Source: Chrysemys picta bellii
Taxonomy: Eukaryota
Reading direction: 5' to 3'
DNA length: 64,000 bases
Assembly (NCBI RefSeq): GCF_011386835.1
Contig: NC_088802.1
Coordinates: 42,656,001-42,720,000, forward strand
Part shown: one piece after another, positions 40,670 to 64,000 of the stretch
How the letters are laid out: each line of letters opens with the position of its first letter
How positions within the stretch are numbered: the stretch's first letter is position 1
The notes under the pieces: model-generated
Database searches by the model: none
What the model was told of the DNA's origin: nothing
What the model saw: the letters and a program-made list of their open reading frames with translations, nothing else
Program-made: the position numbers and the translations under genes

Positions 40670-43600
40670 CTGTTTTTCTATTGGGTGTGCATAGAGTGAT
40701 GGCAATTGGTACAGGGGTTAACAACTACCATGCAGCTATGTGGGAGCTGCTGTGATAGGATCCATTACCTAGGTGCATTTGGTGCCTCAGTTGTATCCTG
40801 CACTGGCTGTGGGGAGAGGGACAGTCTAGTGCTGACTTTGAGACTGGCCATGCTGACCATAGTGGGAGCAGGTAACAATTGTTTTGTGAGGTTTGGGGAG
40901 GGGGATCTGGGGCTACACGAGGAACGAGAGAGGGGTCCCATGCTGGACAGATACAGCAGGTGAAACCCCGGTGACGCCATCTCCTCAGCATTACTGGGAA
41001 ACGTTGGGACCCTGGGGACTGTACTCTGCTAGGGCTGGATGGGGCAAGGGAAACCCCACCCTCAGATTCCTTGTCCCACATGAATAAGAATTGAAAAACC
41101 TAGCAGCCATACGTAAATGAAATTGCGATGGAATCTCTTCTTCAGACACAGAAGGACTGAGCTCTCACAGACCTCCCTAGAAACACAAGACGCGAGCCGT
41201 CAGCCAACTTCATCCAAGGACCTCACTCATGTATTATAGTCTGTTGGTTGTCTGAGGGATGCTGCAAGATGGGGAACAGATGCAGCATCCATTGATTTTA
41301 TACGGTAGGCCCAGAATATGGCAGGCACAAGTAGGGCCAGCCTAAGCTGTTTTGTTACCCACGATGGAAAATGTTTTCAGCAACCCTGAACAGATGAGCA
41401 AACAAAGAAAAAAAAAAAACCCACCCCCACTTGGTGCCCCCAGAAGTTGGCGCCCAGGGAGACTGCCCTCATCGCCCGCCCCTGCAGTCAGGATTGTCCG
41501 GTGGGCCTGTGTATAAGAGAGAGAGGGAGAGAACACTGCCGGGATGGACTGTGACCTATCCATGTCTGCGCGATTGGGCTAGCCCCTGCTGTCTGCAACC
41601 TAGAGGATATCAGCTACACAACCATGTGGATTTCATCAGTTATTACTGGTTTTAGCAATGCTAAAGCTTGCCAGGGCCGGTGTGGGGAACTCCCATGGGC
41701 GTTCCTGTGTCAGCGAGGGTAACAATCCCAGTGATACAAGACATGTTAGAGAGCCTGAGCCTGCTGCAGCTGGTCAAGGGGAGGTTTGCCACTGATTTCA
41801 GTGCAAGTAGGATCAGGCCATTAGATAGATGCTCTGTGTCTCGTCCCATGGATTCTCCTTTTCCACCACACACATCACAACGGAACAGTGCGCTCTTTGT
41901 TTCTGGCTATTTTACCAGATAGTGGCCTAGTAGTTAGAACAAGGACTCTATTCCACCTCTACCATTTGCTCTCGGCCTGGTATTAAGAAAGTCACTTCAG
42001 CTCTCTGGGCCTCAGTTTCCCAATCTGTAAAATGCACTGATCCTTGTAAACCCATTTCAGGACAGGGCGCTTCTTACAGTGTAGATGGGGTTCCCTGTCT
42101 GCACCTCCCAGGGGGTCGGATAGCCATTACAAACCTCTCTTTCTCTGGGGTTCCTCCCTGGAGATAGAGCGAGCAATGTGTACTCTGCCTATGCACAGAG
42201 GAGTTTGGGGAGGGACTGCACAATAATACCATGATTCCCCTTACACCAGCGCAATTCCCCACCCACTCCAGTGCAGGCGTGGGCCTAAATAGGACAATTC
42301 AGCCCTTCCTCTGATTTAAAGGGCCATCAGTTCCTCACGGTCATGAGCATCGAAGCCACTCCATTTTTCAGAGCTATAGCTGATGTTCTACTGTTCACCT
42401 TCTCCTGAGCCAACAGTGTCTTTGATGGGTAATAAATAAGCCCCAGCCACTTCCGGCTATCCACAGAACATCACTGACATACTTACTCCAGTCTGGACAG
42501 ATCTTCAACCTCCTCAAGCTTCACTGAGTGGTTTTCATCCAGGTACACCTGAAACGTATGGGAGAAATGGCTATGAATTGCATGCAGGTTGACAGCACCC
42601 TAAAGCTTACCTGCCTATTGCAGAATATACCTGTTTCCATGTCATGTCCATCTCAAGGATATCCTCAGTGACATCTTCTGCCTCCCACCTTTCTCTCAAT
42701 GTCTTCGGCCTGTGGGTCTTGACCAGATCCTGGTCCTTATACATGGCCCATTTGCTGAGGTTCTCAATGGTGAGTCGCGGGAGCAGCATTTCAGAGTTCA
42801 GCCATGCCGTAGGATCACACCCTAGAGTTCGCCGCTGAGTCCAGTGCACCTGGGCTGGGGCTTCAGACCCAGCATGTTGGATGAGATTTGCAGCCTCTTT
42901 ATCAACATCTCCCTCAAAGAAAGAAGCCATCAGATCCTCTGAGCCCTCTCCTTCCTCCTTTGGAAGGAAGTCCTGCTCATACCGATAGTTTCCAGCTGCC
43001 TCTGGGAAGAGGGGGGGTTTAGTGGCCTGGTATGGTGACTGCCCTCTTTGCCCCTTTGCAAGGAACTGGGATTTGGATACATCTTTCCCCTCGGACGTCT
43101 TTATCCCTTGGGATGAGGAGCTCAAAAGCCTAGTCACTCTGTACTGAGTTGCAAGGCATTTTGCTTGACTCAGATCACCTGGCATTGACGGATCAATTTC
43201 ATCGTTGTGGGGAAGCCCTTGACTGGTCCTCTGACAGGTTTGCTCCTTTGAGAGGTCATGTTTGAACTTGCAACCCGGCTGCACAGACATCACTGCTTTC
43301 CTGCTAGATACATCTATTGACTGTGGCTGTGATTCACTATTCCCGGAAGAAACACCTCTTGTCTTCACCATGTGATGGACCCTGGGGAACACGATGGCGA
43401 ATTTGGCATCAGTGACACTGTTCTTCTCCTTAGCAGGTCCGTCCAGATTTAGCAATTGCACAGAGGAGCTAGCTTCATTAAGGGGAGAATCGCATGAAGC
43501 CAACTGGGCTTCTTCCAGCTCCTCTGTCACCTCAGTACGAGGATGATCCCATTCTAGCAATGGCTGAGAAGAGCTTTCGCTACTCAACTCCCTCTTTCTC

Positions 43601-45936: not shown

Positions 45937-46466
45937 CACGCCAGTATTCAGAAGTCCATCATCATTTATTGAAGTTCACCTACAAAAAGAAACACATGCG
46001 GCTTCTACTGTACAACTTTGCAACTGCTGCTGATACAAATAGACAAGTGAAGAGGCTGGATCCTGCATAACCATAATCATGTGACTTCTACAGGATTTAC
46101 TCACACATCTATTAGACTGAAGAACCATAATGCTGAGGGGCATTAGTTGTCACTGTTTAAATCACTCAGTATATCCTCTATTTGGTTTTCTCATTAATCC
46201 GCCTCAGATTTGGGACATAGACTCCTTTTCCTGAACCCCACCACTTACAAACAACTACAACAATTTTCAGCTTCAAGATCTAGTATGCCTAATCCATACA
46301 TAGGCCTGATCATTGTGCATGGTTAATAAAGCTTAGAGGTAGCATCGTGTTATGGCTAAAGCAAGAAGGGCCATTTTATTTTTATTTTTCCTTCTCCATT
46401 AACCCTCTGTGCAGAATACATCGTATTAACTACATCAGAGGAATGAAAGGTGAATGGAGAACTCAC

Positions 46467-47114: not shown

Positions 47115-48169
47115 TCTATAAACCAAGTTGATATGAAGTGCCAGATTGTCTGCCCAAAATATAGGTACAGTTTTTATGTTTTATAATTTGCTATTATTCT
47201 TCCCCCTTTTGTTCCAACATTTCTTTGTTAATGGGTAAACAGCAGCTGGGTAAATAATAGTTAAGGGTAACTAATGGCGTGGGTAAATAGTAGTAACTTG
47301 TGCAGCAGTTTTCAGTTTTATTTTCTGCAGTGGAACAGAGACACAATATCTAATGGATCAGGCTCAAGATTTGACTTACCCCAGAACCAGAGATTAGCCT
47401 GAGCTGCAACAATTTGGATCCAGAACCAAACTTTCACAGCCAAGATTAAGTCTGTCCTGGCTGGCTCAGTTGGAGTCTTATTAGAGAGAAGGTATAAAAG
47501 GGAAATAGGTAGAAGACATAAGGTAGGGGAGGAAATTGACACACTAGCGAGCGGGGAGGAGGGGAATAGCGGATTGCTCAGATCACAGCCATGGAAGAGC
47601 TGATGCCGCCTGGTTCCCTCTCATTGTCTGGCCTGGTCAGAACATCTTTCAGGAGCAGAAAAAATAAATCCCAATGGTTGCAATATACGTTCGGAAGTCC
47701 CAACATACAAACAGTGAGGCCCATGGTGCCCCTTGCCACACTCGATCAAGTTGCTAAGTACTCTCCAGGAAAGCCATATCCAAAAGTGGGGGCAGCCTGG
47801 CCCCATCAAAAGTGATAAATTAAAACAAGTTTCCAATGGCCTATATGCCCAGTTCCTTTCATCTAGTACATTCAGGTTGTAAAGAATGTAAACTAATATG
47901 TGGATTTGCCCAGACTCCTCTGTCTGCTGGAGAATCTCATCTCTCCCCTTTTCAGTTATGAAGACCCTTTACTCTCCAATTCAATCTGCTGTTGCCAAAC
48001 AGAGGAAAATACCACCTGGGCTCCAGACTCCAGCCCTATTAATTCCCTCCTTCCCATTTGTCTTAAGGAGGCGTTAATGGCCAAGCCTGGTTTTAATCCT
48101 CCATGCTAAACGCTCCAAGGCAGCCAGATAAGACCAAAAACCATTCAGCTAACTAAGGACATAACTAGG

Positions 48170-48340
48170 AAGAACCTGGTAGAAGGGAGGAAGGGAAAAT
48201 TGAGGGTGAATATCAGAGAAAATGTCTAGCAGTGAGATCTACCATGCTGTGGCATTGTCTCCAAAGAGCCCCATGGCTTGGGACATTTAAAACTAGTTTA
48301 CATAAAGCAGTAGGGCATGATGTGTGCAGAACAATCCAGC
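48170..48340 (+). mobile_element. Old CR1 fragment
   Basis: Degenerate match to the CR1 3' region (aggctgaatatcagg-like). Confidence 0.4.
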
Positions 48341-48628
48341 AATCAGCGGATGGAGACGATCATATACATTTTTCTCTCTCTGTAATTAACTTCTCTTCTC
48401 TGCCCTGGCCTCCACCAGTCAGTCTCCTCCCTCTTTGTTCTCAGAGACAGTCTTTAATGGCTCAGTAGATTTGTGCAGGGGGAAGGGAAACTTCTGCTGA
48501 TAAGTTTCCTGCAAACTTCTAAACAAAGACCTATGCCTCAGGAGTCTGGAGTTAACCCTCAGCTTCACTCAAGCCCCACAGAGCTGTTTGCTAAGAGCTT
48601 GCATGGATTGTCTGGGGAGCCTCTACAT

Positions 48629-48787
48629 CAGTGGTTCTCAATCTATGAACCATTGTGGGCCACATTTGCAGCTGTCTGTGTGTTGTGTGGGCTGCCTCCA
48701 CACAATATAGATACTACCTGTATGGCCCTGAGGATGTCACATGGGCCGCAGCTGCGTGTTGATTGGGCCCCAGGTTGAGAACCACTG
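48629..48787. mobile_element. hAT-Charlie-type MITE
   Basis: TIR CAGTGGTTCTCAA; TSD CTCTACAT/CTCTGCAT. Confidence 0.82.
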
Positions 48788-49072
48788 CTCTGCATTAAGT
48801 GCATTGCTGGGAAATCAATTACATGAACAGCTGGTTGTTTCACTTGTCCTTAGGTCCCACATAGCAGCACTTGGTTTTGGTATTTCCACACACAAATGTC
48901 CCTGACAACCATGGCTGTACCATTGCATTCTGAGACTCTGAAGCACCTATCCCATAATAGCCAATATTCTTGCAGGACACAGGGGCTTTGGGGTGATTCC
49001 CAAGGCACCTCACTGTGGGATAGAGTTAGGAAGACTAGCTGCACTCAATACAGAGGCAGCACTGTTCCAGTA

Positions 49073-49300
49073 AAAAGAACAGGAGTACTTGTGGCACCTT
49101 AGAGACTAACAAATTTATTAGAGCATAAGCTTTCGTGAACTACAGCCCACTTCTTCGGATGTAGAAGTGATATATGCATCCGAAGAAGTGGGCTGTAGTC
49201 CACGAAAGCTTATGCTCTAATAAATTTGTTAGTCTCTAAGGTGCCACAAGTACTCCTGTTCTTTTTGCGGATACAGACTAACACGGCTGCTACTCTGAAA
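49073..49300. mobile_element. Palindromic Penelope-like insertion with hammerhead motifs on both strands
   Basis: 12-bp TSD ACTGTTCCAGTA; ~90-bp inverted arms; + strand motif at 49176-49215. Confidence 0.82.
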
Positions 49301-49515
49301 ACTGTTCCAGTAGTTTCCTTTCTTTGCCAGGAAGAAAACGTACAGGATGGTACTGGTTCAGCCAGACCCGAGTTAAAAGCCTGAACCAGCGGATCAAATT
49401 CAGTGATGAATCCAGGTCATGTGTCACCTGACTCACATTGTTGTATACGCTAAGAAGAGTGCTTGGGATGAGTCAGTGTAACCTGTGTTTCTAACACACC
49501 TGGGATGGCAGTCGC

Positions 49516-49932
49516 CAGCGGCAGCTCCAGTCACCAGTGCTCCAAGCGCGTGCCTGGGGCAGCAAGCCGCTGGGGGCACCCTGCCGGTCCCTGCGAGGAT
49601 GGCAGTCAGGCAGCCTTCGGTGGCATGCCTGCGGGAGGTCCGCCGGTCCCATGGATTTGGCGGCAATTTGGCAGCAGGTACGCCGAAGCCGCGGGACCAG
49701 GGACATCCCGCAGGCATGCCGCCAAATCCGCAGGACCGGGGACCTCCCGCAGGCATGCCACCAAATCCACGGGACCGGGGACCTCCCGCAGGCATGCCGC
49801 CAAATCCGCGGGACCGGGGACCTCCCGCAGGCATGCCGCCAAATCCGCAGGACCGGGGACCTCCCGCAGGCATGCCTCTGAAGGCAGCCTGCCTGCCATG
49901 CTTGGGGCGGCAAAAAGCTAGAGCCGCCCCTG
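49516..49932. mobile_element. GC-rich hAT MITE with a 39-bp internal tandem repeat
   Basis: CAGGGGCGGCTC-type ends; TSD GCAGTCGC/ACAGTCGC. Confidence 0.82.
49693..49876. repeat. 39-bp tandem repeat, about 4.7 copies
   Basis: Unit GGGACCGGGGACCTCCCGCAGGCATGCCGCCAAATCCGC. Confidence 0.9.
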
Positions 49933-50233
49933 ACAGTCGCAAGGAGCTGTACAGACTTTGCAAGCTCACGGGGTTCCAACCAATGCTTTGTTGCCTTTTC
50001 CAGCTAATTCAGGGCCTGCCCTCACACCAGGGCCGGGATGTGGGGAAGAGATGGCAAAACAAGATGAGTCAGCACCAAGCTCATCATTTTTAATCTTTGG
50101 GGCTACCAGAAAACCTATGGTGGGGAAGAAGGAAATGGGGAACTGTTATTTAATTAGCCAAGGCAGCTTGGCTAACTAAATCCATCCACTGCTCCAGAAG
50201 CTTCAATTAATTGCTTGTTGTTCTGCAGACTAA

Positions 50234-51104
50234 GGGTATATCTTTACTACAGAAGCTACAGTGGCACAGAAGCTATGCTGCTCATAGTTAAGGCTACAAT
50301 TTAGTCATGGGTATTTTTAGTAAAAGTCATGGACAGGTCACAGGCAATAAACAAAAAGTCACGACCAGTGACCTGTCCATGCCTTTTACTAAAAATACCC
50401 CTAACTAAATCTTAGGTGCTTGGGAGGGGGCAGGGGTGCTTCAGCGGACTCTGCTGCTCCTGGTGGGGTGAGGGCAGGCCAGAGCCCACCGTTGCTTCTG
50501 GGTGAGGGGCGGCCCAGGGCCCAACCAGCGCCACTGCTCCTCCGGGCGGGGAGCAGCCCAGGGCCTCGCCACTGCTGCTGCTAGGGTGGGGGAGTGGCCC
50601 AGGGCCCACCTCCGCTATTGCTCCAGGCGGGAGCAGCCCGGGCCGCCACTGCTGTTGCTCCAGACAGAGGCGGCCCAGGGCGCCACTGCTGCTCCTGGAT
50701 TGCTGCTCTGGGGCAGTGCCTGGGACTATCTAAGCAATGCTGATGCAGCTGGCCCCGGGGCTGCCCCAGCTGCTGGGGCGGCCCTTGGGTCAGCTGCACC
50801 AGCCGCTGCAGAAGTCCCGGAAACCGCTACTACCATGACCTCCGTGAGAGACTCGCAGCCTTACTCATAGTGTAGCACCGCACTGTAGACACTTGCTACA
50901 GCAACAGAAGGGGTCTTTCTGTCAGAAATAAATTTACCCCCTCGAGAAGTGGTAGCTGGATTGACTGAAGAATTCTTCCATCGACCTAATGGTGTCTATA
51001 CCTGGGCGAATGTTGGCTTAACTGCGTCTCTCATGGGGTGTGAATTTTTCACACCCTTGATTGACATAGCCAGATCGACCTACGTTTTAGGTGTAGACCA
51101 GGCC
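50234..51104. mobile_element. PIF/Harbinger-type MITE split by the 50289-50863 hAT
   Basis: TAA|GGGTATATCT...GTGTAGACCAGGCC|TGA; same family as 26167-26438. Confidence 0.7.
50289..50863. mobile_element. hAT non-autonomous element nested in a Harbinger MITE
   Basis: TAAGGCT/AGCCTTA ends; perfect TSD CTCATAGT; internal ~40-bp inverted repeat at 50300-50409. Confidence 0.82.
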
Positions 51105-51193
51105 TGAAATTTGTCTAAGGGTCCTCAAAGGTATTTAAAAATACAGTCCACAATACATTCCAACCCTTTGGAGAATCTAGCCTGGGCAACTAA

Positions 51194-51447
51194 GGCCTGG
51201 TCTATATTAGGAAATTAGGTCAGTATAACTATGTTGCTCAGGGGTGTGAAAAATCCATTCCCTTGAGCAATGCAGTTAAAGCGACCTAACCCATGGTCTA
51301 GGAGAATTCTCCCGTTGACCTAGCCACCGCCTCTCAGGGAGATGGATTACCTGCGCTGACAGGAGAACCTCTCCTGTTGGGGTAGGTAGCATCTTCACTA
51401 AAGCACTACACAGCTGCTGCACCACTGTTTTAAGTGTAGACAAACCC
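51194..51447. mobile_element. PIF/Harbinger-type MITE (reverse orientation)
   Basis: TAA|GGCCTGGTCTATA...AGTGTAGACAAACCC. Confidence 0.7.
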
Positions 51448-53863
51448 AAAGCATGGATTGCTGCACAGATTTAAAGGACCTCACACTAAAGAACAGCTGA
51501 TCAAAGTCTGCCCCTAGGCCTTGTTAAGGACAAGAAGGCTGCAAAATCGCACTTGAGAATTATCTGCTTCAGAAATGCTCAGGGAAGCTAGAGTAAGTTT
51601 GACTGTGTGTGCTTTTTGCACTCCACTACTCAGCTCTCTCCTTCACTGCAAAACAAATCCCCACATCTGGGGAAGTGATTTTCCACTAGGTCCCAACTCT
51701 GACTTGTGCAAACTGTTGCCCAGCAGAAGGCATCATTATTAAATAGAGGGAAAGTGGGTTATACAGACAACAGTGCATGCCCTGAGCGGTAGAAACAAGC
51801 AACCAGTGCCTTTAGTATTTCCTTTAAACCTGATTTTTCAGGTACTCTATGGATAAAAATAACACTTAGCACATATGTACCACAGTACAGATTCAACGTC
51901 CTGTCACTAAACCAACTTACCGTACCCCTCTCTTTAACACTCACCTTTTCATTGCCTGGGCTCGGTTAGGGCTCTTTTCATTCTCCCCTCATTTGAACAC
52001 TCACATCCCCCTTACCCTCCTTCCATTTACCTTGTTTTTCAGGTTCTGGTGTTTATGGCCTAATTCAAATCTTCAACCTGCAAGTGAACAGGAGTTTTGA
52101 TCACTGCTCTTAGTGGCAGCAGGATTGGGCCCTAAATCCATAGATGGGGATAGATGTTAGTATTCTGATCTGAGTGCTTATTGTAAAGTGTATAACACAT
52201 CTACGCAAATGGTAAATCATTTCTGTGCAATAGAGATAATTGGGTTTGTGCATTATTGCTAAGTTGGATAGTGTTTGGAAGGAAAATAAAATCCAACACA
52301 TACTAACAGATGCCCCAATGCCATGACACTTGGATCTAGATGAAGATTAAAAACACCTCGAAGTTCAGGGGCACTTGGACCCAGGATTTCAGTTTGGCTC
52401 ATTATAAAGACAGGGATTGTTTCCAGAATTTGGATTCCAGTTCTGAGTTTGAACAATCTCATAGTTCAAGACTATTCAGACGGAGGGTTTCAATTCAGGC
52501 CCATCTCTAACATATAACTAATAAAAACAAACACATCATTGGCTATATCAAGCTACTCCCTAAGGATCAAAGTTGCTTTCATTAGCCACCTGGACCATCC
52601 ACTTGACTGTGATACACTTGTGGCAGCTGCAATAACCTGCCCATCAGTTGCTCACTTCATTTAACCACACAAACATGCTCTAATCAATTACAGGACAACA
52701 AAACAGTTCCAATTTTCCCATCTGCACTGGAAGAAAGGGGAAATGCCCATCTCATCTGAGAAGGAAGAACCCAGATGTTACTAAGAAATATGGCAGTAAC
52801 TCGAAAACAGAGAGAAGAGCAGACACATTGCACTCTCACAATATTTCTGAGGCAGGCAAAGTGTTACAGATAAGTCTAATTTTTCCTCCACATACCACTT
52901 TGGACCTGTTTCACCCTAACCAGCCCATAGCATCCCATAGGAGACACCGTGCAGCCATTCATCTGAAATTGAAACACTTGAAAATTATACATTAGTAGTT
53001 TATGTTTTCATTTACCCAGAAGAGTTGAGCAAGCTTCTTGTTTATCACTATCTATACAGTCAATTTCCCGACTCACCCATCTTGTTCTTCCTGATCCCAG
53101 TTAAGAGCTCAGCAGCTGACAAGCCACACTCAAATAGATGGTAAGGCTTTAAGTCCCCTATTTCTTGCCTGAACCCCACTGTAGTCCTTGCAAGCCTGCC
53201 CAGCTGTGAAGTCTAATACAGAGTCTGGCTGAACTATGCCTAGGCATAGCTCAGCCTAGGCATATGGAGGGAAGCTGGCATCAATAATTCAAGCTTCCGC
53301 ATGGCACCCTTGAACTTTTCAACCAACAGTGGCACCAGCTGGTTACCAGGGGCTTGGGAAAGAGGAGATGAGGGACTTCACTTGAGCCAGAGCCAGCATC
53401 AGACCTGGTGTAGCAGGTGCAGCTCCAGAGTCTGAAAGAGCAGGTCAGCTCAGAGTCGCAGGGCTACAAGCTCAGAGGTTACCAGACTGAGCGATGTTGA
53501 TGCCATCCCATGCATTGCTCTAGCTAGTGAAGGGGACGGGAGTGCCCTGGTCTCTGACTTCTGGGCCATTAGAATTCAGTTCCAGCTCAGGACCCAGGTG
53601 AACATGGGGTTTGGTGGCCTCTGACCCATTCTCTTTCCCCACATCTAGCTGAGGCCTGGCTGCAGTCCCTGCTGAGGAGGAGGACAGCAGTGCATCGGGT
53701 TTCTGATCAGGACAGGAGTGAGGTACAGCAGCAGTGATGTACCAGAGAGGCTTGCGACACATGCAGAAGCACTAAATCCTCCCCCAGTTGCTTTTCAGTT
53801 AAGCCTCACCTCACTTTCCTTGAATACAGATCTCCCAAGAGAAGAATTTCACTGCTGATCAAG

Positions 53864-54037
53864 TGTCAGAGGGTAGCCGTGTTAGTCTGGATCTGTAAAA
53901 AGCAACAGAGAGTCCTGTGGCACCTTTAAGACTAACAGATGTATTGGAGCATAAGCTTTCGTGGGTGAATGCCCCAGATGTATGCTCCAATACATCTGTT
54001 AGTCTTAAAGGTGCCACAGGACTCTCGGTTGCTTCTT
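53864..54037. mobile_element. Palindromic Penelope-like insertion, different subfamily, hammerhead truncated
   Basis: 13-bp TSD ACTGCTGATCAAG; ~53-bp inverted arms. Confidence 0.8.
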
Positions 54038-54067
54038 ACTGCTGATCAAGGATCCCTCCCAGTAGAA

Positions 54068-54372
54068 CAGGGGAGGGCAATGTTCGGCACGCGGCTCGCC
54101 AGGCTAAGCACTTTGGTGGGCTGGGTCAGTTTATTTACCTGCTGACGCAGCAGGTTCGGCCGATCGCGGCCCCCACTGGCCGCGGTTCGCCGTCCCGGGC
54201 CAATGGGGGCGGCGAAAAGCCGCGGCCAGCACATCGCTCGCCCGCGCCGCTTCTTGCCGCCCCCATTGGCCCGGGACGGCGAACCGCGTCCGCGTCAGAA
54301 GGTAAATAAACTGGCCCGGCCCGCCAGGGTGCTTATCCTGGCGAGCCGCGTGCCAAACGTTGCCGACCCCTG
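54068..54372. mobile_element. Near-fully palindromic CpG-rich hAT-Charlie-type MITE
   Basis: Long inverted arms (GGCACGCGGCTCGCCAGG); TSD CAGTAGAA/CAGTAGAG. Confidence 0.85.
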
Positions 54373-55484
54373 CAGTAGAGGGAGCCTTCAAGTGAGTAAA
54401 TCCGCTTTCCATTCCCAAACACTCAGTGTAATGTAATGAGCTTTGCTTTCCCAGATTTCCCAGGGGTGATTTTTTTTTTTGCATTGGGATGGTGCGGCCT
54501 AGACACATGCTGCATGCCATTCCTCTCTGTACACCAAGTACCAGTCAGATTGCAAACTAGCTGCCGTGCTCTTTCTGGTTAGCATGGCCAGAGCATAGGG
54601 CTTCTCTAAGGACAACACTGGCCTGGCCCTTTAAGGCAAAGTCCTAGGCTCCAGCCCTGTCCAGAAGCCTCCCTCCTGATTAGACAAGATAGCTTAGGTG
54701 GGGCTGACAGGCAAGGGAATAAGTGGCTTTAACCCCAAACGTGATTAGCACTGTTAAGATAAAATGTTGGATGCTTAACCACAGCTATTTGTGTTTTGGG
54801 TGGGGCCTGTTTTCCAATCTCCTGCCAAGAAAAGCCCCTTGCTTGCTTGCATACACTGTGGTCTTTGCTGTGTAAGAGCAAAAACTGGATGGGGAGCTGG
54901 ACAGCTTAAAAAAAACCTTACTTTTCCTAACTCCTTCTGCCACTGGATGTTACTCTCCTCATTAGCTCACAAAGAAAGGGGCTGTAGAACAACAGGTTAG
55001 TTAACTATTTCATGACCTTGTTTAATTCATTTGTTATTTATAACTAATTTCCTCCTCCTCCCCACCCTGGCCATGTATTGTTTTTTTAAAAGTACAGGAT
55101 GATCGAGTCATCTGGAGCATGGATCCTTCATTAGCTCTGCAAAACAGCCTAGGCTGCTTCTCTGAGGTTTAAAATCCTGATGTGGAATAACAGCTTCCTT
55201 TGGAAATCCAGCTGTTTAGGCTTTTTCTAACAGGGAAGCAGCTCCCATATGCCCTTTGTCAGTAACAGCTGGAGCCTAATGCCTTCCTTTGGGACTTTCC
55301 ATGGCAGTCAGACTATGTGATTAGCTTTTGCATGAGGAGCTGGGCTGTGAATGGGCTTGCTTAGAAAGTTATTCTCTTATCAAAGGCTTTGCTGTGTCCT
55401 GAGCAATTTAAATTTAGTCAGTGACTTTGTTGCCCAAGTTTAACCCTTACATGGTGTTCCCCCTCCCCCCCCCCAATGTTCCTT

Positions 55485-55576
55485 TCACTCTATGCATCTG
55501 AAGAAGTGAGGTTTCTACCCACGAAAGCTTATGCCCAAATAAATCTGTTAGTCTTTAAGGTGCCACCAGACTCCTT
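55485..55576 (+). mobile_element. Penelope-like terminal fragment with a hammerhead motif (55494-55534)
   Basis: GCAT-CTGAAGA-A-GTGAG..CCCAC-GAAAGCTT-ATGC; one stem II mismatch. Confidence 0.72.
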
Positions 55577-55714
55577 GTTGTTTTTCCTGACACTGTAGTG
55601 TCTGTTCAGAAATAAAAAGGGTGTGTGTGCAAGTCTGACCAACAGCCCCATGAGCGCTGAAGGAGGGCCTACCCAAAACCAAGCAAAGCAATCCCCCTGA
55701 GCAGCTAGATGGCT

Positions 55715-55870
55715 CCAGATCACCGAGACAGAAGATCTGGGGTTAGGTCCTCGCTCTACCACTGATTTACTGTGTGTTCTTGGGCAAGTCATTTCACCTT
55801 ACTGAGCCTCTGTTTCCTGACTTCTTCAGTGAGGATGAGAACACCAGCCACCTCTGTCAAGCACTAAGGA
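55715..55870 (+). mobile_element. MIR/CORE-type SINE
   Basis: gttcttgggcaagtcatttcac..ctgagcctctgtttcc core. Confidence 0.55.
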
Positions 55871-57769
55871 AGGTTATTAGCCAGGAACCTAGTCAAATGG
55901 CCCCGCTTAGATCAGAACTTCACAGAGGGCTCTGTAACTCACCTTAGCTGCTCAGGGACTCATTCATAAGGCATTTTAACAGTGCTGCTCAGAGCCTTGG
56001 CCAGCTGCTTGATCAGCTTTGGAGCCCGCTACTGGAATCCGCTGTCCCCACACAGAACCTTTGGCTCCAAGAGCTGTGAATGACACACAGCTGTCAAGTG
56101 CAGGCAATGTTTAAAACATTTTACCCTGGTCTTAGTCTCTGTTCCCCCCCCCCCCCCCCCCTGGACTGGCAGAAGTGCCACCAAACCCAGCCAATCGGTT
56201 GTAAGTGTGAAGAACAAGGAGAAAAAACAGCAAGCTTGGTGCTGGCATATAGCCAGCTGTGCTCAGTGCAGGCCTTGCTGGGGAAGGGCAAAGAGCTTCA
56301 TGCCACTTTTAGAAGATCCCCAATTTTGGGGCCAGTTTGGCCCATGTGTATGTTAGAGCAGCCTCAGGGCTATTCTGATTTAGGGCCAGCTGCCTATGGC
56401 CCCAAGGGGACATTCCAGCAGCCAGGAATGGCCAAAGCATAGAGATGCTCCAACCAGAGGCAGACCTTTCCCACCCAATGCCTGTACGGGCTGTGTATAT
56501 GGGAGACGGGGCACCCAGGGATTCCTATACCAAGGAAGTCAGATCTTCTGGCTTTACAGACCCTGTGCACTGGGGGGGATGGCAGGAAGAGCCATATCAG
56601 AATGGAGACTCTGTGGCTCCGTAAAGTCTAGGGAGCAGTGGGAGACACCTGCAGCAGGTAGAAGGTGTGGAGGAAATATTTTAAAAGGAAGCCACATTCT
56701 GCAGGAAAATTCCAGACTCCCTACTTTCATTAGCACATGGCCTTCCAGACCATTGGACACTCTGTGCTCCAAGCTGATAAGGCCTCTCTCTCTTTCCCCT
56801 CCTCACTGCCTTTTTAAGGTATCCAAGCACCTCATCCCCAGAGGAAACCTGAGGAGGTCAGATAAAGTATTCATGACTGCAAGAGGAAACCAAAACAATT
56901 AAGCAACACACCTTTGAAAACAGACCCCCTTTAATATTTCAGGAGCGCTTTGTTGCCTAATTGTCTGTAGCTCAATGGGGCTAGGGTGATCCTGTTGCAG
57001 TGGACCTTTGGAAGCTGGCCCCCCATTGCTCCTGCCCAGAGGTTGACCAGAGGGGCAGGTGTCTGGGCTGAAGCATTCCATGGAGTTTTTGGAGGAAGAT
57101 TGTGTTACACTGAACTGCAGGGCTGTGCTTTGCTTTATTAGGGTCTTAGCTAAAAGACTCAAGTCCCCTGTGGACTACACTAGGGCCCAGCTCAGACTCT
57201 CCCACTACTAATCCCCAGAGCTCCCTGTCTGACCCTGGAAAGGGAGTAGTCTCTGTTCCCCTTTGATCATAAAAGCTCACATTTGGAGAGCTTTTGGGAA
57301 CAATGGGCTAAGGGGCAGATCTAAATCTTGTTAGAGTCAATGGAAATATTCCCATCAACTTTACGATCAGCCTGTGCATGCAAGAGGCAGTTACTTAAGT
57401 GCCTGGGATACAGACCTAGTGTGTGCCTGTACACCCAGCCTGTTCTCCCATGAGTAGTGGCCCCTCTAATCCATAGGGAGGCAGCAAAGTTCTCTATGAA
57501 TAAGAGGATCAAAATGTTCAGTTAAATTCCATAAAATAAGATTAGAATAATTATGAGCAGGGCACCTGAAAATTCCCAGGGGAGGTTAATGGGCTTGGGG
57601 ACATAAGGGCAGAAGGAACTGAAGTGTTTCTTGTCTGATTTTACAGTTCAATGAAAAATACATCATAAGACCCGTTTTATCAAGAAACTGCTGTCTATCC
57701 ACAGCATGCCCAGGTAGGATAATACTCGGCATTTAGTATATTGCAGACTTTTCCTCAAGGCCCACAGTG

Positions 57770-57925
57770 TGCTGTGTTAATACTAATTGGTCCCACACTA
57801 CTGTGAGCAAGGTAGTGTCCACATTTTCCAGAAGGAGAAACTGAGACACAGAGCATGACTGACGCAGTGGTAGAGCTGAGAATAGAATGCAGCAGCCCCT
57901 GCTCCAAGCACTAAATCATGCTGCT
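57770..57925 (-). mobile_element. MIR/CORE-type SINE
   Basis: gaaactgagacacagag reverse core. Confidence 0.5.
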
Positions 57926-58543
57926 TCCCTTGAAGCCTGTGTAGCTGCACATTCGAGGTGCATGGCAGTGAGAGACCTTATTATAGCAGTGATATAGGCT
58001 GGGAGTTTAATTGAATGCCCAAACGCCTCATGGCTCCTTTGAAAGGCCCAGTCAGGAATTTTCTCCTTCAATGAAGAGAGCCATAGTAACTGGTAGAAGT
58101 TGCCTCTTCAAATATAGTGCAGCTAGCTTAAAGAGCTTACGGGTGGCGAATTCACAGCTGTGGCATGGGCTAGTGACCATTTCTATGTAAATAGCAGCCT
58201 GTGCTATTCAGTCAGGCAGAATTACTCTAGCAGGGCACATGGAGCAGCCATTGGAGGTAGCAATGACATCACAGTGCTTATGACATTGGAGGGGGCCACA
58301 CCTCTGCTTGATCCAGCTACAGATGCCAGGGCCTGGGCCAAGAGCTGCCTACTGAAGCATTTGTTCTAGAACCTGCAGTCTCCTGGCAACAGCCCAGCTA
58401 TTCCTGGGTAGCGATCTGATAGCAGAGGGAGGAGGTTCCAAAGGGATTGCCCAAAACCTCACACCCCTCCTTCTCAGAGTGATTAACTGCTCTCTTCTCA
58501 CCCTTTACCTCTCAGAGACCCCACTGCCCCGGGCACAACTGCC

Positions 58544-59482
58544 ATGCAGGTTGAGAAAGTTGGGTGCTGGAGGAGTGGGCTAGACAGGCCCAAGTCCTGC
58601 AGGGAGAAGTTCCTACAAGCTTGGAATGAAAAGCTGAAACTCCAGCCTTGCCCCATCTCCCCGCAAGTGCCAAACTGCCCGTCCCCCGGCAGCATTCCGG
58701 CCCAGGGGCAGTGGCCTGGGGCTGAGCCTGTACCTTTCTCGCTCAAGGGGGCTCTGCTGCATCCTAGCTGCCATCCTGGTGACAATGCCCTTTACTTCCT
58801 GGCAGTGGTGACTGCAGTGGACCACTCAGGCTCCACCCCTGTGTCTTTTGTGGCACCTGGGGGCTGCTCCGGGCACACACCCAGAACTCCAGCTGGAATA
58901 AGACCCTGTGACAAAGATCCAGGTCCTTTCTACAAGGAGCTGGCAAGACCCCCCTTGGCCTGGGAAGGGAACTCTGAGGAGGAACTCCTCCAGATCTGTG
59001 CTTCAGACTTGCTGCTGGGCTCCTCTCGGAGGAAGAGGCCGCGGCTGTTACCCCCCAACAGGAAGATGCACGTAGAGGTATGGAAAAGAAAACCAGCATC
59101 CCATCCTCCGGAGGAGGGCGCGAGAAGCCCGGTCCCTCTGGAGTACAGTCACCTGGTAGATGCCATGGCAATGACTGAGCCCGCCGACATTTCTGAGGTG
59201 GAATCTTTCTACCGGCAATTCACCCCCTGGCCAAGGAGACGAGGCTCCTGCAGGAGCACGAAGGCTGTTCACGCTCAGACAGACAGCGCGTTGCCTGTCA
59301 GGAAAGCAGATGAGGCTGCCCCCGAGCAGCATAGCCTCTGGGGAGCAGCAGGCAGTGGCTTTAAGCAGCACCCCAAGAGGGCCATGGCCTCCATTTCCAC
59401 CCTCATCCTGGCTGCCAAGCGGCCCAGAGACACTGCTTGGAGTGAGCACCTCCCACCCAAGAAACGGTACATCCAGTACTGA
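58544..59482 (+). CDS. Unrecognised 312-aa Pro/Ser-rich, probably nuclear protein (single coding exon)
   Basis: Longest ORF in the window after the myosin first exon and not repeat-derived. Polypyrimidine + CAG acceptor at 58515, GCCATG start, AATAAA at 59680-59685. Confidence 0.6.
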   Translation: MQVEKVGCWRSGLDRPKSCREKFLQAWNEKLKLQPCPISPQVPNCPSPGSIPAQGQWPGAEPVPFSLKGALLHPSCHPGDNALYFLAVVTAVDHSGSTPVSFVAPGGCSGHTPRTPAGIRPCDKDPGPFYKELARPPLAWEGNSEEELLQICASDLLLGSSRRKRPRLLPPNRKMHVEVWKRKPASHPPEEGARSPVPLEYSHLVDAMAMTEPADISEVESFYRQFTPWPRRRGSCRSTKAVHAQTDSALPVRKADEAAPEQHSLWGAAGSGFKQHPKRAMASISTLILAAKRPRDTAWSEHLPPKKRYIQY

Positions 59483-59679
59483 CTCCAGTGGACACATGGG
59501 GCTCTTGTTGTTCACTAGGACCGGCTGGTGTGCTCCTACGACTTCAGTGTAATGAGGAGTTCTCTCCCAGCCAGAGCCAAGTGCCCGTCAGAGCAGCAAT
59601 CCCTGCAGCAGCACCCAACTCAGGGACTCTGGCTAAGCTCCCCTTCACCTCCATTTTAAATAGACAATTGTGTTTTTAA

Positions 59680-59685
59680 AATAAA
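59680..59685 (+). promoter_or_regulatory. Polyadenylation signal for the 58544-59482 ORF
   Basis: AATAAA about 200 nt after the stop, followed by T/GT-rich sequence. Confidence 0.45.
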
Positions 59686-59928
59686 TCCCTTTTTTAGAGG
59701 TCACCTGGTGTTTGTTCACTGCAGATGGTGGGTTGAGGAAGAGGTGCTTGGGAGCTCCTTCAAGGGAAGGGTGTATCATTTACTATGTTTGCACAGTGCC
59801 TCGCCTCTAGGTGCTATTGGATTATTAATTTTAATTAATTGGGCACTCCCTGGCCACTTCTCAAAGAGGGGATGCTTTGAGCAGGAGAGAGGTGAAGCCT
59901 CTCAGGAGTGTTGTCACCTTACTGAAAG

Positions 59929-60182
59929 CAGGGGCGGCTCTGTGTATTTTGCCGCCCCAAGCACGGCAGTCAGGCGGCTTTTGGCAGCGCGCCTGCGGGA
60001 GATCCGCTGGTCCCACGGCTTCGGCATATCCACCGCCGAATTGCCGCCAAAACCGTGGGACCGGCAGACCTCCCACAGGCATGCCGCCGAAGGCTCCCTG
60101 ACTGCCACCTCCACAGCGACCGGCAGGGAGTCCTCTGCGGCTTGCAGCCCCAGGCATGCGCTGGTGCCTGGAGCCACCCCTG
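59929..60182. mobile_element. GC-rich hAT MITE (family of 49516-49932)
   Basis: TIR CAGGGGCGGCTC; perfect TSD ACTGAAAG. Confidence 0.85.
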
Positions 60183-63100
60183 ACTGAAAGGCTGCAAACC
60201 ACTTAATGCTTTGTATGCTAAGGGTATGCACAGGGACTATTCTGGAGCCCATGTGACCTTGTGTTCTACTAAGGTCAAAGATCCCAGGCAATTTAAAAGT
60301 TGCTAATAACTCCTGCTGCTCCAAGCAAACAGTGCTGGAGGGCTCCTGAAGAAGGGGACTACCTCTCCTGAACTGCTTTGATCTCTCAGTTCTCGCAATC
60401 TCACGTTTAATAAAAGTGAAGGATTTTGAGAAGTCCCTCAGTGTCTCCTGCTTCAATATTCAAGTTAAACATGCCTAGCAGCATAAACTAACTCCCCTAA
60501 TACTCAATGGGCAGAGTCTTATTTGCTTTATTAACAGACTAATCTATTCTCTCCCTATGCATGCAAGATGCCCTGACATGGGATGACTACCTCCACCTAA
60601 CCTTCTTTAAAAGGGACTAGTTCGCAAAGTTGGGTGCCTCTGCTTAAAACAGCCTATCTATTAATGGAAAAAGTCCTTTTCGGTGACCAGCTGGCCAGAG
60701 ACTAGTGCATCAGCAAGTGAGCTAACCAAGGGCTCTTCGCTATAGGAATGATATTTTATTAGCAAGTGAACCTTCAGGAACAGGAAGTAGCTGTGGTTGC
60801 ATCTGCCCACAACCAGATGTGACCACATCACCAACACAGCTACCAACATGAATAGGAGCTCACAGCATGGGTGGTTGGTGGAGTGATTTAAGAATCCCCA
60901 CATAATGTGACTTTGGTATTAGCTCAGCCATGTCACTAACCCCTCAGAGGCCGGATGTTGAGTATGCTGGTTCATAGGCCAGATCAGAGCTATTGGAAAA
61001 GGCAGGCACTGCTCTTGTCCACTAATTGTTTTCTATGAAAAATATCTTAATTCCAGCAGGGTTTAACAAAACTATAGAAACAGTTGCCCGAACAAGGCCC
61101 AAGAAACTAAAGGGGTGGCACAAAAGTGGAACCATATCATTAAACACAGTGTTCAGATGAACTAGGACTGAGGGGTTCAAACCCACCCAAGCTGTGACTC
61201 TCTGGGAGCATAATGTACTTTAGGAAGAGGACTGTATTATTTTCCTTTGAACATTGTATTCCACCAATCTCACCCCAGTCTAGCAAACTTTCTGGGGTGG
61301 CAGTCTACTGGTGTATGAGGGTGTGTGGGGTTAGTTCCCCCATTCTCACCCTTCTTGTCAGTATAGCTACCCCCCAAGCATTTACAAAAATCATGAATCT
61401 GCCCCCCCCCCCCCCAAAAATGTATCAGATTTTAAATAGTAAGTTACGGGTTTCTCTTTGCCTTCTGATTGCTGAGCCATTAGGGCACACTTCATGTTTT
61501 CACAAGCATGAAGGCGAGAAACTGGCTGTATTTATTTTTAAAGTGAAAACTGATACTCTTACCTAATCACAGACCTCCAGGAACAAAGATTTTTTTAAGA
61601 GGGAACCTCCCCAAAAAACCCACCACCACCCAAAAAAAAATAAATCACAAGTCACGATAAGAGCTGACAACACTGCTGTTCAAAATTGTGGGCAGCTTAG
61701 ATGGGTGGAGGATGTGTGTGTTGGGGGAAGAATCCCAATCAGTTTGCTTGGAAGGCACTTCTACTCCTGCACAAAAGTGTAGCATCTAGAGACAGAGGCA
61801 AGGTACCCCATACTCAAGAAGGGGAGGGAAGGGAAGGTGATCAGATGAGGATACCCCTCATCTGCAGGTCTAGAGGAAAGTTTTATTCCACATCCCCTGG
61901 GTGACAAAGAAGAGTACAGAGCTTTCATTGGCACACACAGGTTGTTTGGCCAGTTTAAGCAGATCAACTTTGAAGTTAAGAGGAAAGGAGAACAGCTTCA
62001 GGTCACATCTGCACAAGGAGCTATGCTATACCACCAGACTCCACTTGCACTGACAAAGCTGTGCTTTTGTCAGTCTAGTTTATCTAAACCCCCACCCCAC
62101 CAAAATCTATACCAGCATACGTACAGTTGTTCGTATATCTACATCTGCACTATCAGGGAATCACACCCATGACTGACACAGCTCTGCCAGCAAGTTTGTT
62201 GTGTAGACAGGGCCTCTACTATTCCTGCCACTACACACTCCCTTCTTAAAGGGGAAGAGGTAGCTCCTGCAATGAGCTTTACTCTTTTGTGGGAAACAGG
62301 GAGGACGACTTGACATAGATGCTCCCTCCTCTACATATGTTTTGGCCTTAAAGAGACCCTTACTGCTGGTGAAAGATGGAAGAATCAACACATGACCCAT
62401 TGGTTTGAAGTATTTAAATACCTTCTCAGCAGCTCTGCTTTTGAGTACGGCCCCTCTGACTGCAGGAGATTCCCCATCAATTGTTCTGATCAAGGAGTTT
62501 CTCAGCTAGTGGCTTCTTTATAAAGGCCTCCCTTCACCGATGTACCTTGTGCCCCCAAAAACACTGTGTGTGTCACCTTCACCTAGCAGGCTCACTGGCT
62601 TCCAGAGTCCTGGATAAGGTGGGACCCAACATCAGTTACTGCATAAACACCCTGCCCTGTCACTCCCAAATGGACTGCAGTCAATAATCTAGCTGGGCAG
62701 AACCAAGCAATGCTGTTTGCTTCACAACCCTCCCCAATTAAAGCAGTTGCTTCCTGAACCCCAGTTGATACCTTCTGCATTGCTTTCAGGTACTACAGAG
62801 CTGGAAGAAGAGTCTCAGGTTTGACTCCTTGCTAGCAATTGACACTTCTTGAGGGCATATGATAAGCACTTCCATCTGCTTAACTCCCACTGAAGTTGAT
62901 GGGGAGTTCTGCATACAGGAGAACTTCAGACCCAAGCTGGCATACAAGTTCAAAGTTAATTGCACAAGGTGCTGGTTTCCAGGGTCACATGCAGGTTTTT
63001 TCCCCCAGTATAATCTCCCAGTAGTTTGGAGAACTCCAGGTTATGGATTATTGTTAAAGCTGGTCAGAAAGTGATAATGTTTCCTAGGGGAAACCCTATG

Positions 63101-63535
63101 GCGGAAAAAAAAATGCTTTTCCAACAAAAAAACAAAGTCTGAGGAAGTGACAATTTACACAAGTTTCCATGGTCAGAAATCTAATTGTCAATTAGTAGAA
63201 GTGGATGGAACATTTCCAGCCAGCTGGGGTTTTGATACTCTGATATAGTCCTTCCCTCTCCTGTACTATAGCCATGCTTAAACGTAACAGGAGACTTTCA
63301 AGTCTCCCCTCTCAGTACCTGAATCTATCTACATCAGTGATTTATGCTCCAGCTATACTGACAGGTGACATCTGCCCCAGCGTGGAGCTCGTGATTCATC
63401 AGCCACTTTATAGGGGGAATCTTCCAATTCTGGAAAAACAGAGAGAAAAGCATTGAGCTACCACCATCTTCAGCGGAGTGACCAACAAGCAGGACAGAGG
63501 TAGTATAGCAAGGACTATGCTCCACTGACCCTTAC

Positions 63536-63615
63536 CCAGTTCTCTGCTTGTGAGCCCACCACCTGGCTCCTGAACTTGTTAATTTTGTTTCCAAACATAC
63601 TGCCCAGCCCAGAGG
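63536..63615 (-). other. Candidate 80-nt exon of an upstream minus-strand transcript
   Basis: tttctctgttgggttctgtcag acceptor, TGG|gtaagg donor; neighbouring acceptor at 63429 and donor at 63701. Confidence 0.3.
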
Positions 63616-64000
63616 CTGACAGAACCCAACAGAGAAATTGTTCAGGGGTTACTCAGACCCACATTTCCTCAAGAGCTTAAAAGTCCTTTCAACATACTCA
63701 CTTCTACCCTTGGGAAACAAATAAACAAAAGCTGCCTTACATGGGAGACACCCCTAGCAACGGGCAGACTCTAGGGATGAGCAGAAGGAGAGCTGCCCTA
63801 TTACAGTTTTAGAGGCTTCCAGCTCTTCTGTGCAATTCTAGACTACCAACTGTAGGCTACCTTTGCAGCATGGAGAATGGTCTCCCCACTCTCCTTCCCC
63901 TGCAAAGAGACTTGTGTTATCAGAAGGTTTATGTTGACCTGTGCATCTGCCTCCCCGCCTCATCCCTCCTGGGGAGCAGTTTGGTAATTACAGGAGGTGA

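Follow-up and report, generated by a model that had tools for sequence, protein, structure and literature searches.

The closest described relatives of the gene analyzed here are database entries produced by automatic prediction. The gene lies in a stretch of 64,000 nucleotides (nt) from Chrysemys picta bellii (RefSeq assembly GCF_011386835.1, contig NC_088802.1, positions 42,656,001 to 42,720,000 of the forward strand), called the window below. Its main element is an open reading frame (ORF) of 312 codons (939 nt including the stop) at 58544-59482 on the plus strand. A word-indexed protein search found a RefSeq protein of 324 amino acids with approximately 100% identity to this ORF. The protein is XP_023957540.2, "uncharacterized protein LOC112058983" of C. 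picta bellii, and it consists of the window ORF preceded by 12 further residues. The gene is thus already predicted by NCBI, as an automatic prediction. The initial annotation of this DNA had presented it as an unknown or orphan gene, which the RefSeq entry contradicts. It had also named a clear match to a known gene as grounds for giving up its claim, and an identical entry exists, which has neither a name nor a domain.

Annotated orthologues of LOC112058983 include LOC120382973 (Mauremys reevesii), LOC103277830 (Anolis carolinensis), LOC106705162 (Latimeria chalumnae), XP_069058131.1 (Pleurodeles waltl), and AB205_0189320 (Aquarana catesbeiana). These entries share a central module and a C-terminal motif with the window gene, and also the neighbor LLGL2 where this can be checked. 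All of them, including that of the turtle, are automatic predictions without name, domain, function, or literature. A literature search for the LOC identifiers and motif strings of the family found no papers, and a family-level description covering range, synteny, motifs, and the apparent loss in mammals and birds seems to be unpublished so far.

In architecture the protein resembles MRI/CYREN, APLF, XLF, and PAXX, which are short or disordered and carry a basic patch together with hydrophobic or aromatic peptides, one of them at the extreme C-terminus (PMC4831024). The likeness is one of architecture alone, as there is no sequence homology, the Trp of the APLF type is absent, and Tyr takes the place of Phe. 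The basic clusters KRPR and PKKR, which are flanked by prolines, fit the classical monopartite nuclear localization signal (NLS) of the SV40 large-T type. A plain NLS would not need the invariant residues that flank the clusters in this family, L-L-P-P following the first and L-P-P preceding the second. The reading favored here, which the sequence evidence makes fairly probable, is that LOC112058983 is a gene of at least sarcopterygian age, with essentially all of its coding sequence in the last exon, seemingly lost in mammals and birds, whose product would be a nuclear, disordered, motif-based adaptor or regulator.

Gene structure and coding potential

LOC112058983 has two or more exons, the last of which holds essentially all of the coding sequence. 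The ATG at 58544, within GCCATG, is conserved as the start codon, and LPPKKRYIQY forms the C-terminus of the protein. A polypyrimidine tract and AG end at 58515, which is 28 nt 5' of the ATG, and the reading frame is open for 19 codons 5' of the ATG, across this acceptor. An AATAAA poly(A) signal is found at 59680-59685 (plus strand), 198 nt 3' of the stop. The last exon on the plus strand (58516-59685) is made up of a 28-nt leader, the complete conserved coding sequence, and a 3' untranslated region (UTR) of approximately 200 nt up to the poly(A) signal. In the RefSeq model the coding end of exon 1 is 8 nt long (57706-57713, plus strand; sequence ATGCCCAG) and is followed by a GTAGGA donor at 57714. 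The plus-strand intron (57714-58515) has 802 nt and phase 2, and its pyrimidine tract and AG occupy 29 nt at 58487-58515. Exon 1 was placed by the coding range of XP_023957540.2 (P0047), which is 10001-11777 of sequence L008 (record CM062329.1, assembly GCA_011386835.2). Positions 1-16295 of L008 are 100% identical to window positions 47706-64000. A weak exon 1 candidate at 56478, sought as ATGCCN followed by GT, was dropped because the RefSeq coding range puts exon 1 at 57706-57713. The searches described below used the exon 2 ORF, with the database protein P0047 as a stand-in for the full spliced model. The window contains no N, and no part of it was flagged as resembling human sequence.

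The features listed in the initial annotation (the 939-nt ORF, the acceptor, the GCCATG, the LPPKKRYIQY end, and an AATAAA about 200 nt downstream) are all present as described. Its suggestion of an upstream coding exon agrees with the RefSeq model, which splices a short coding exon onto the very acceptor it had pointed out (58515/58516). It had also placed the ORF in nonrepeat sequence, and this holds within the window, where megablast of the region against the rest found no second copy of the ORF.

The 12 additional N-terminal residues of XP_023957540.2 are not conserved. The models of Caretta, Chelonia, and Dermochelys and one isoform from each Mauremys species start at the ATG equivalent to 58544, and the other Mauremys isoforms have differing first exons spliced to the same acceptor. 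Alternative first exons on a single acceptor would normally imply that the models are supported by RNA. The Caretta (P0044) and Pelodiscus (P0002) models splice inside the coding exon at approximately 58745-58748, just 5' of the sequence encoding GALLHPS, so that the N-terminal helix is lost. The mid-exon acceptor of Caretta relies on an AGG (Arg) codon, and Chrysemys has AAG (Lys) at this position. Because AAG would shift the AG by one base and break the frame, Chrysemys probably does not produce this isoform. In the Pelodiscus model the N-terminus corresponds to the translation of the window at approximately 58265-58400, which is 5' of the main acceptor.

Comparison with related genomes suggests that the gene is single copy and under purifying selection. 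The corresponding locus of Chelydra serpentina (L003) aligns collinearly and has an intact ORF of 314 codons, which differs from that of Chrysemys by one deletion of 6 nt and one insertion of 12 nt, both in frame. Disruption of the frame in close relatives, which was to count against the gene, is therefore not seen in Chelydra. By the Nei-Gojobori method the Chrysemys/Chelydra pair has a synonymous rate (dS) of 0.136 and a nonsynonymous rate (dN) of 0.041, giving an omega of 0.30, and the changes are enriched at synonymous sites (Fisher p = 1.2e-5). An independent pair, Naja and Macrovipera lebetinus, has an omega of 0.33, and the dN/dS check proposed at the outset thus gave approximately 0.3 in both turtles and snakes. 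Chelydra, the sauropsid contig L001, Naja, and Macrovipera all have an equivalent acceptor ending in tctcag, 8-45 nt upstream of the start codon. Chelydra and L001 also share the 3'UTR and the position of the AATAAA, 198-199 nt after the stop. The Macrovipera lebetinus sequence is a viper contig (L004; PMC12377087), and the snake Logan contigs are genomic rather than transcribed and carry no splice information. A maximum-likelihood (ML) tree of 25 members recovered turtles, Gekkota, Lacertoidea, Hemicordylus together with two Logan contigs, snakes, and iguanians. This agreement with the species tree is the pattern expected for a single-copy, vertically inherited gene.

These data bear on the possibility that the ORF arose by chance in GC-rich DNA or belongs to a dying pseudogene, the RefSeq models being prediction artifacts propagated by homology. 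The guanine-cytosine (GC) content of the region is approximately 0.59, and the opposite strand carries ORFs of 95-155 codons, which are due to this GC richness. In addition, identity between the turtles is the same in the ORF as in its flanks, and expression is indicated only by the RefSeq models. However, when the sequence was shuffled 200 times with composition preserved within 2-kb blocks, the longest ORF starting with ATG measured 163 codons in the median and 255 codons at most. Since 0 of 200 reached 312 codons, the length of the ORF is not an artifact of composition. The dN/dS ratios in two independent pairs, the restriction of indels to those in frame, and an ORF that is intact in more than 25 species over more than 400 million years, with invariant motifs, also speak against it. 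The comparative data effectively refute this explanation, which is hardly credible. The shuffles, the RefSeq match, the orthologues, and the dN/dS values uphold the original view that this is a genuine protein-coding gene.

Distribution of the family

Judging by the distribution of its orthologues, the family goes back at least to the common ancestor of coelacanth and tetrapods; it is of sarcopterygian age or older and is not restricted to reptiles. Orthologues, all labeled "uncharacterized," are found in nine turtles, approximately 15 squamates, two salamanders, ranid frogs, and the coelacanth. An exhaustive hmmsearch with an 18-sequence reptile profile against 1.84 billion representative proteins gave 15 matches at E<=1e-3. 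The new named matches were from Pleurodeles waltl, Ambystoma mexicanum, and Latimeria chalumnae (LOC106705162, E = 7.5e-14). A match of 146 amino acids (E = 1.8e-5) is the ranid frog form, being 83% identical to AB205_0189320 of Aquarana catesbeiana. The short form of frogs, approximately 150 amino acids long, retains just the central module and the C-terminal basic motif. Against the reptile profile the coelacanth protein scores 68 bits and the frog form 41 bits. P0027, a protein of 1429 amino acids with an E of 4e-4, was dismissed as a repetitive artifact. A second, word-based profile search that included amphibians and coelacanth added no further lineage. The initial annotation had called the gene lineage-restricted, and the relatives in squamates, salamanders, frogs, and coelacanth do not agree with this.

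No named relatives from mammals, birds, crocodilians, or teleosts were among the matches of the exhaustive search. For mammals and birds the material behind this absence comprised annotated proteomes and some of the assembled sequencing runs. One protein from such a run (P0003, 311 amino acids, SRR18112698) is 52% identical to the turtle protein, has N- and C-termini of the turtle type, and is placed outside squamates and close to turtles in the ML tree. It may come from an archosaur or the tuatara. The gene had been described as perhaps lost in mammals, and the lack of any mammalian or avian match in the profile search is in favor of this, but it is proteome-level evidence and not proof. Loss, or divergence beyond recognition, in mammals and birds is a plausible and the simplest reading of the sequence searches.

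Instead of having been lost, the gene could evolve fast and have an orthologue among the named mammalian genes, one that now lies elsewhere or has diverged beyond detection by profiles. Most of the protein is disordered, with only approximately 80 well-conserved residues, and the frog proteins are already reduced to approximately 150 amino acids and 41 bits, so that slightly more divergence would make them undetectable. Nevertheless, none of the 15 matches among 1.84 billion proteins was mammalian or avian, although the coelacanth protein still scored 68 bits. Furthermore, the second, word-based profile search added nothing, and the literature search found no paper containing the motifs. An unseen mammalian orthologue is therefore considered unlikely.

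Conserved motifs and proposed mode of action

The protein is mostly disordered in prediction, with no recognizable domain and with four short conserved islands on which selection mainly acts. It has a mass of approximately 34 kDa, an isoelectric point of 9.4, and 12.5% proline, and no signal peptide or hydrophobic segment can be read from its sequence. Pfam gave no family at E<=10, in agreement with the earlier statement that no domain is recognizable. The best hit in a PDB profile search, NFATC2IP, had an E of 0.16 and is regarded as noise. In the ESM Atlas, feature searches with the whole protein and with residues 140-232 gave values of 0.85-0.89 to tiny plant hypothetical proteins, which is below the meaningful level. 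A model of the C-terminal half gave a best E of 7.7 with Foldseek against PDB and template modeling (TM) scores of at most 0.26 in the Atlas shape search. AlphaFold2 with a 17-sequence alignment gave a mean predicted local distance difference test score (pLDDT) of 52.6. It modeled a confident helix at residues 19-33, weak strands at 148-152 and 176-180, helices at 199-206 and 215-226, and a short C-terminal helix. When the C-terminal half was modeled with 29 sequences, the mean pLDDT was 61.5 and the elements were unchanged. Conservation, scored over 17 taxa as identity to the residue of the turtle, is sharply uneven: it reaches 0.67-0.77 at residues 145-180, 0.45-0.62 at 193-228, and 0.67 at 301-312, and falls to 0.11-0.30 in the linkers.

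The central module, residues 145-181 (58976-59086, plus strand), is the most conserved segment of the protein. It contains an acidic run, IC-x-S/T-D-LL, the invariant RKRPRLLPP, and K-M-x-V-x-V, and it is predicted to form two short strands flanking a basic loop, with a pLDDT of 60-78. The family definition of the module (I-C-x-S/T-D/E-L-L, a gap of 4-6 residues, R/K-K/R-R-P-R-L-L-P, and K/R-M-x-V/I-x-V/I) fits residues 151-179 of the turtle protein, and its positions vary little or not at all in alignments of 18 and 29 members. The C-terminal motif H-LPPKKR-Y/F, residues 302-312 (59447-59479, plus strand), lies 3-8 residues from the end in most members. The family pattern L-P-P-K-K-R-Y/F within approximately 10 residues of the end is found at residues 303-309 of 312. 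All 18 reptile sequences of alignment A1 have LPPKK and the Tyr, F replaces Y in salamanders, and frogs have I-H-P-KKR-L. An alignment of 29 sequences, frogs, coelacanth, and turtles among them, shows no variation at Cys152, Pro166, Arg167, Leu169, Pro170, and Lys306-Lys307.

The remaining islands are less widely conserved. Two short predicted helices at residues 194-226 (59123-59221, plus strand), containing PLEYSHLVD and EVESFYRQF, are kept from coelacanth to turtles and are absent from the short form of frogs. A reading of VESFY as a PCNA-interacting peptide (PIP) box was dropped, since salamanders and coelacanth do not retain the aromatic pair. A predicted N-terminal amphipathic helix, residues 15-34 (58586-58645, plus strand), contains CREKFLQAWNEKLK; its helix at 19-33 has a pLDDT of approximately 90. 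It is kept in turtles and squamates only and is unrecognizable in salamanders, frogs, and coelacanth.

The conserved islands suggest a protein that would act in the nucleus as a motif-based adaptor or regulator rather than as an enzyme. K164-R-P-R167 fits the classical NLS pattern K-K/R-x-K/R, and turtles alone have a further K-R-P-R at residues 292-295. Nuclear location is the best guess because KRPR and PKKR fit NLS patterns and nothing points to secretion or membrane insertion. The two basic clusters may act as NLSs of the importin-alpha type, as sites for docking of partners, or as both. The acidic-hydrophobic strand preceding the first cluster and the two helices that follow it are elements typical of partner binding, and the hydrophobic and acidic islands next to the clusters could bind partners. 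Because the L-L-P-P and L-P-P flanks are strictly invariant, a ligand more specific than importin alone is suggested.

Several observations weigh against this reading. Pfam, the PDB profile search, the ESM Atlas, and Foldseek gave no partner, fold, or family match. The evidence for expression of the gene consists of RefSeq models, and nuclear localization is indicated by sequence patterns only. Ordinary NLSs are seldom invariant over 400 million years, and for this reason the motifs probably do something more specific. Finally, nucleotide identity between Chrysemys and Chelydra is 94.0% in the ORF and 94% in the flanks. Since the ORF is not above its flanks, constraint shows only in the split between synonymous and nonsynonymous changes and in the deep conservation.

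The two basic motifs can also be compared with Ku-binding modules. In Ku-binding motifs of either type, a conserved aromatic residue comes after a basic patch; a Pro and a Trp are conserved in the APLF-like type, and the XLF-like type has a Phe and is usually C-terminal (PMC4831024). If LOC112058983 had an internal APLF-like and a C-terminal XLF-like module, it would be a disordered accessory factor of nonhomologous end joining, analogous to MRI/CYREN. The internal R-K-R-P-R-L-L-P is invariant and supplies the basic patch and conserved Pro of the APLF-like Ku-binding motif (A-KBM), K-K-R-Y/F is found near the C-terminus, and the protein is short and disordered like MRI. However, the family lacks the Trp that inserts into the vWA pocket of Ku80 and on which binding depends: 29 sequences have N, H, E, D, or L two positions beyond the Pro, and the Trp at residue 180 is not conserved. 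At the C-terminus the residue after K-K-R is Y in amniotes and coelacanth, F in salamanders, and L in frogs, so that the aromatic residue is not the F of the XLF-like type in most members, and the motif is 3-30 residues from the end. Motifs as short as these also match by chance, and the Ku interpretation is very improbable.

R-P-R-L-L-P could alternatively be a cell-cycle motif, either a minimal RxxL destruction box (D-box) or a cyclin-docking RxL, and the protein would then be a substrate or regulator under cell-cycle control. The minimal patterns are matched by R165-x-x-L168 and R167-x-L169-P, and nearby S-P sites read from the sequence are possible targets of cyclin-dependent kinases (CDKs). 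The full D-box of the anaphase-promoting complex/cyclosome (APC/C), R-x-x-L-x-x-x-x-N, is not present, however, as position 9 is R and the Asn is at position 8, where it is variable. The minimal patterns are very common, and they leave the invariance of both prolines unexplained. A cell-cycle motif is improbable, if slightly less so than a Ku-binding one. On present evidence none of the Ku-motif, D-box, and cyclin RxL identities is accepted.

A more far-reaching reading can be put forward tentatively, as something a little short of an even chance. LOC112058983 may represent a new vertebrate family that dates at least to the coelacanth-tetrapod ancestor and is built around a previously unseen module, two short strands that clamp the invariant RKRPRLLPP loop, together with a C-terminal LPPKKRY peptide. 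Mammals and birds would each have lost the family separately, and frogs would have kept a reduced version. If this is true, the partner or pathway of the family could not be revealed by mammalian and avian model organisms.

Genomic neighborhood and significance

LOC112058983 appears to lie between MYO15B and LLGL2. Open pieces of the minus strand at 28.9-16.0 kb of the window match the Pfam family Myosin_head, a piece at 14.3 kb matches IQ, and one at 0.6-0.8 kb matches MyTH4. The best solved relatives of these pieces are unconventional myosin-XV. LOC112058983 is head-to-head with this MYO15-type gene (MYO15B), and the myosin-XV exons on the minus strand confirm the divergent arrangement reported in the initial annotation. 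A frame of 1110 codons, rich in K, E, and S and without a Pfam match, occupies 42607-45939 of the minus strand; it precedes the motor exons of myosin-XV, which that strand also carries, on their 5' side and is approximately 11.8 kb from LOC112058983. It probably belongs to MYO15B as a giant N-terminal extension exon, presumably comparable to exon 2 of MYO15A. The LLGL2 side of the locus is the same in cobra and lizard. In Naja naja (L002) and Lacerta agilis (L007) the orthologue is a single coding exon, and a convergent gene with an LLGL domain is found 3' of it, at 2.8 kb in Naja and 1.6 kb in Lacerta. No LLGL exons were found in the 4.5 kb of the turtle window downstream of the gene or in the 10 kb downstream of the Chelydra locus, so LLGL2 of turtles must lie farther off. 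The order LLGL, antisense orphan, MYO15 agrees with the human arrangement LLGL2-MYO15B, and not with MYO15A-ALKBH5-LLGL1.

Conserved noncoding sequence is present upstream of the gene. A block at 56815-57130 (core 56835-56985), with no strand assigned, is 0.6-0.9 kb 5' of the exon 1 ATG. It is 78% identical to the sauropsid contig L001, compared to 68% for the coding part, and it matches Lacerta agilis at 78% over 141 nt and Naja at 68%. In L001, Lacerta, and Naja the block is collinear and lies 1.7-2.9 kb 5' of the coding exon. Its invariant cores contain the strings AACAAT and CTTTGTT, which are SOX-like, and TAATTG, which is homeobox-like. The block is a candidate promoter, 5'UTR, or enhancer of LOC112058983, although this assignment is uncertain, and it could serve LOC112058983, MYO15B, or LLGL2. 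A second, short conserved block at 53263-53361 is collinear and farther 5', with 82% identity over 100 nt to Lacerta (828-927 of L007).

Other features were also noted in the window. Between MYO15B and LOC112058983, CpG-island-like stretches at 54001-54400 (GC content 0.61-0.69, observed/expected CpG 0.8-1.1) and 49501-50000 (GC content approximately 0.69, observed/expected CpG approximately 0.7, with ORFs overlapping on both strands) are candidate promoters. At the edge of the first of these CpG-rich stretches is an inverted repeat or long hairpin, 53895-54039, which matches itself in reverse at 88%. Compared on both strands with two Rfam microRNA families, it scored 37.7 bits, below the gathering score of 70. 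Dispersed repeats of approximately 90-130 nt with 92-100% identity occur in both orientations at 46.6-47.1 kb, 49.0-49.3 kb, and 40.1 kb.

What is new here is the picture of a family: a single-copy gene under purifying selection whose MYO15B-LLGL2 locus is kept from turtles to snakes. The family is recognizable back to the coelacanth, relatives in mammals and birds were not detected in the searches described above, and no domain, structure, or paper is attached to it. Many uncharacterized genes with a patchy distribution among lineages exist, and the interest of this one for specialists is moderate. Genes of this kind form a blind spot of biology centered on mouse and human. The invariant peptide motifs of LOC112058983 and its orthologues allow concrete binding experiments in Anolis, axolotl, or Pleurodeles.

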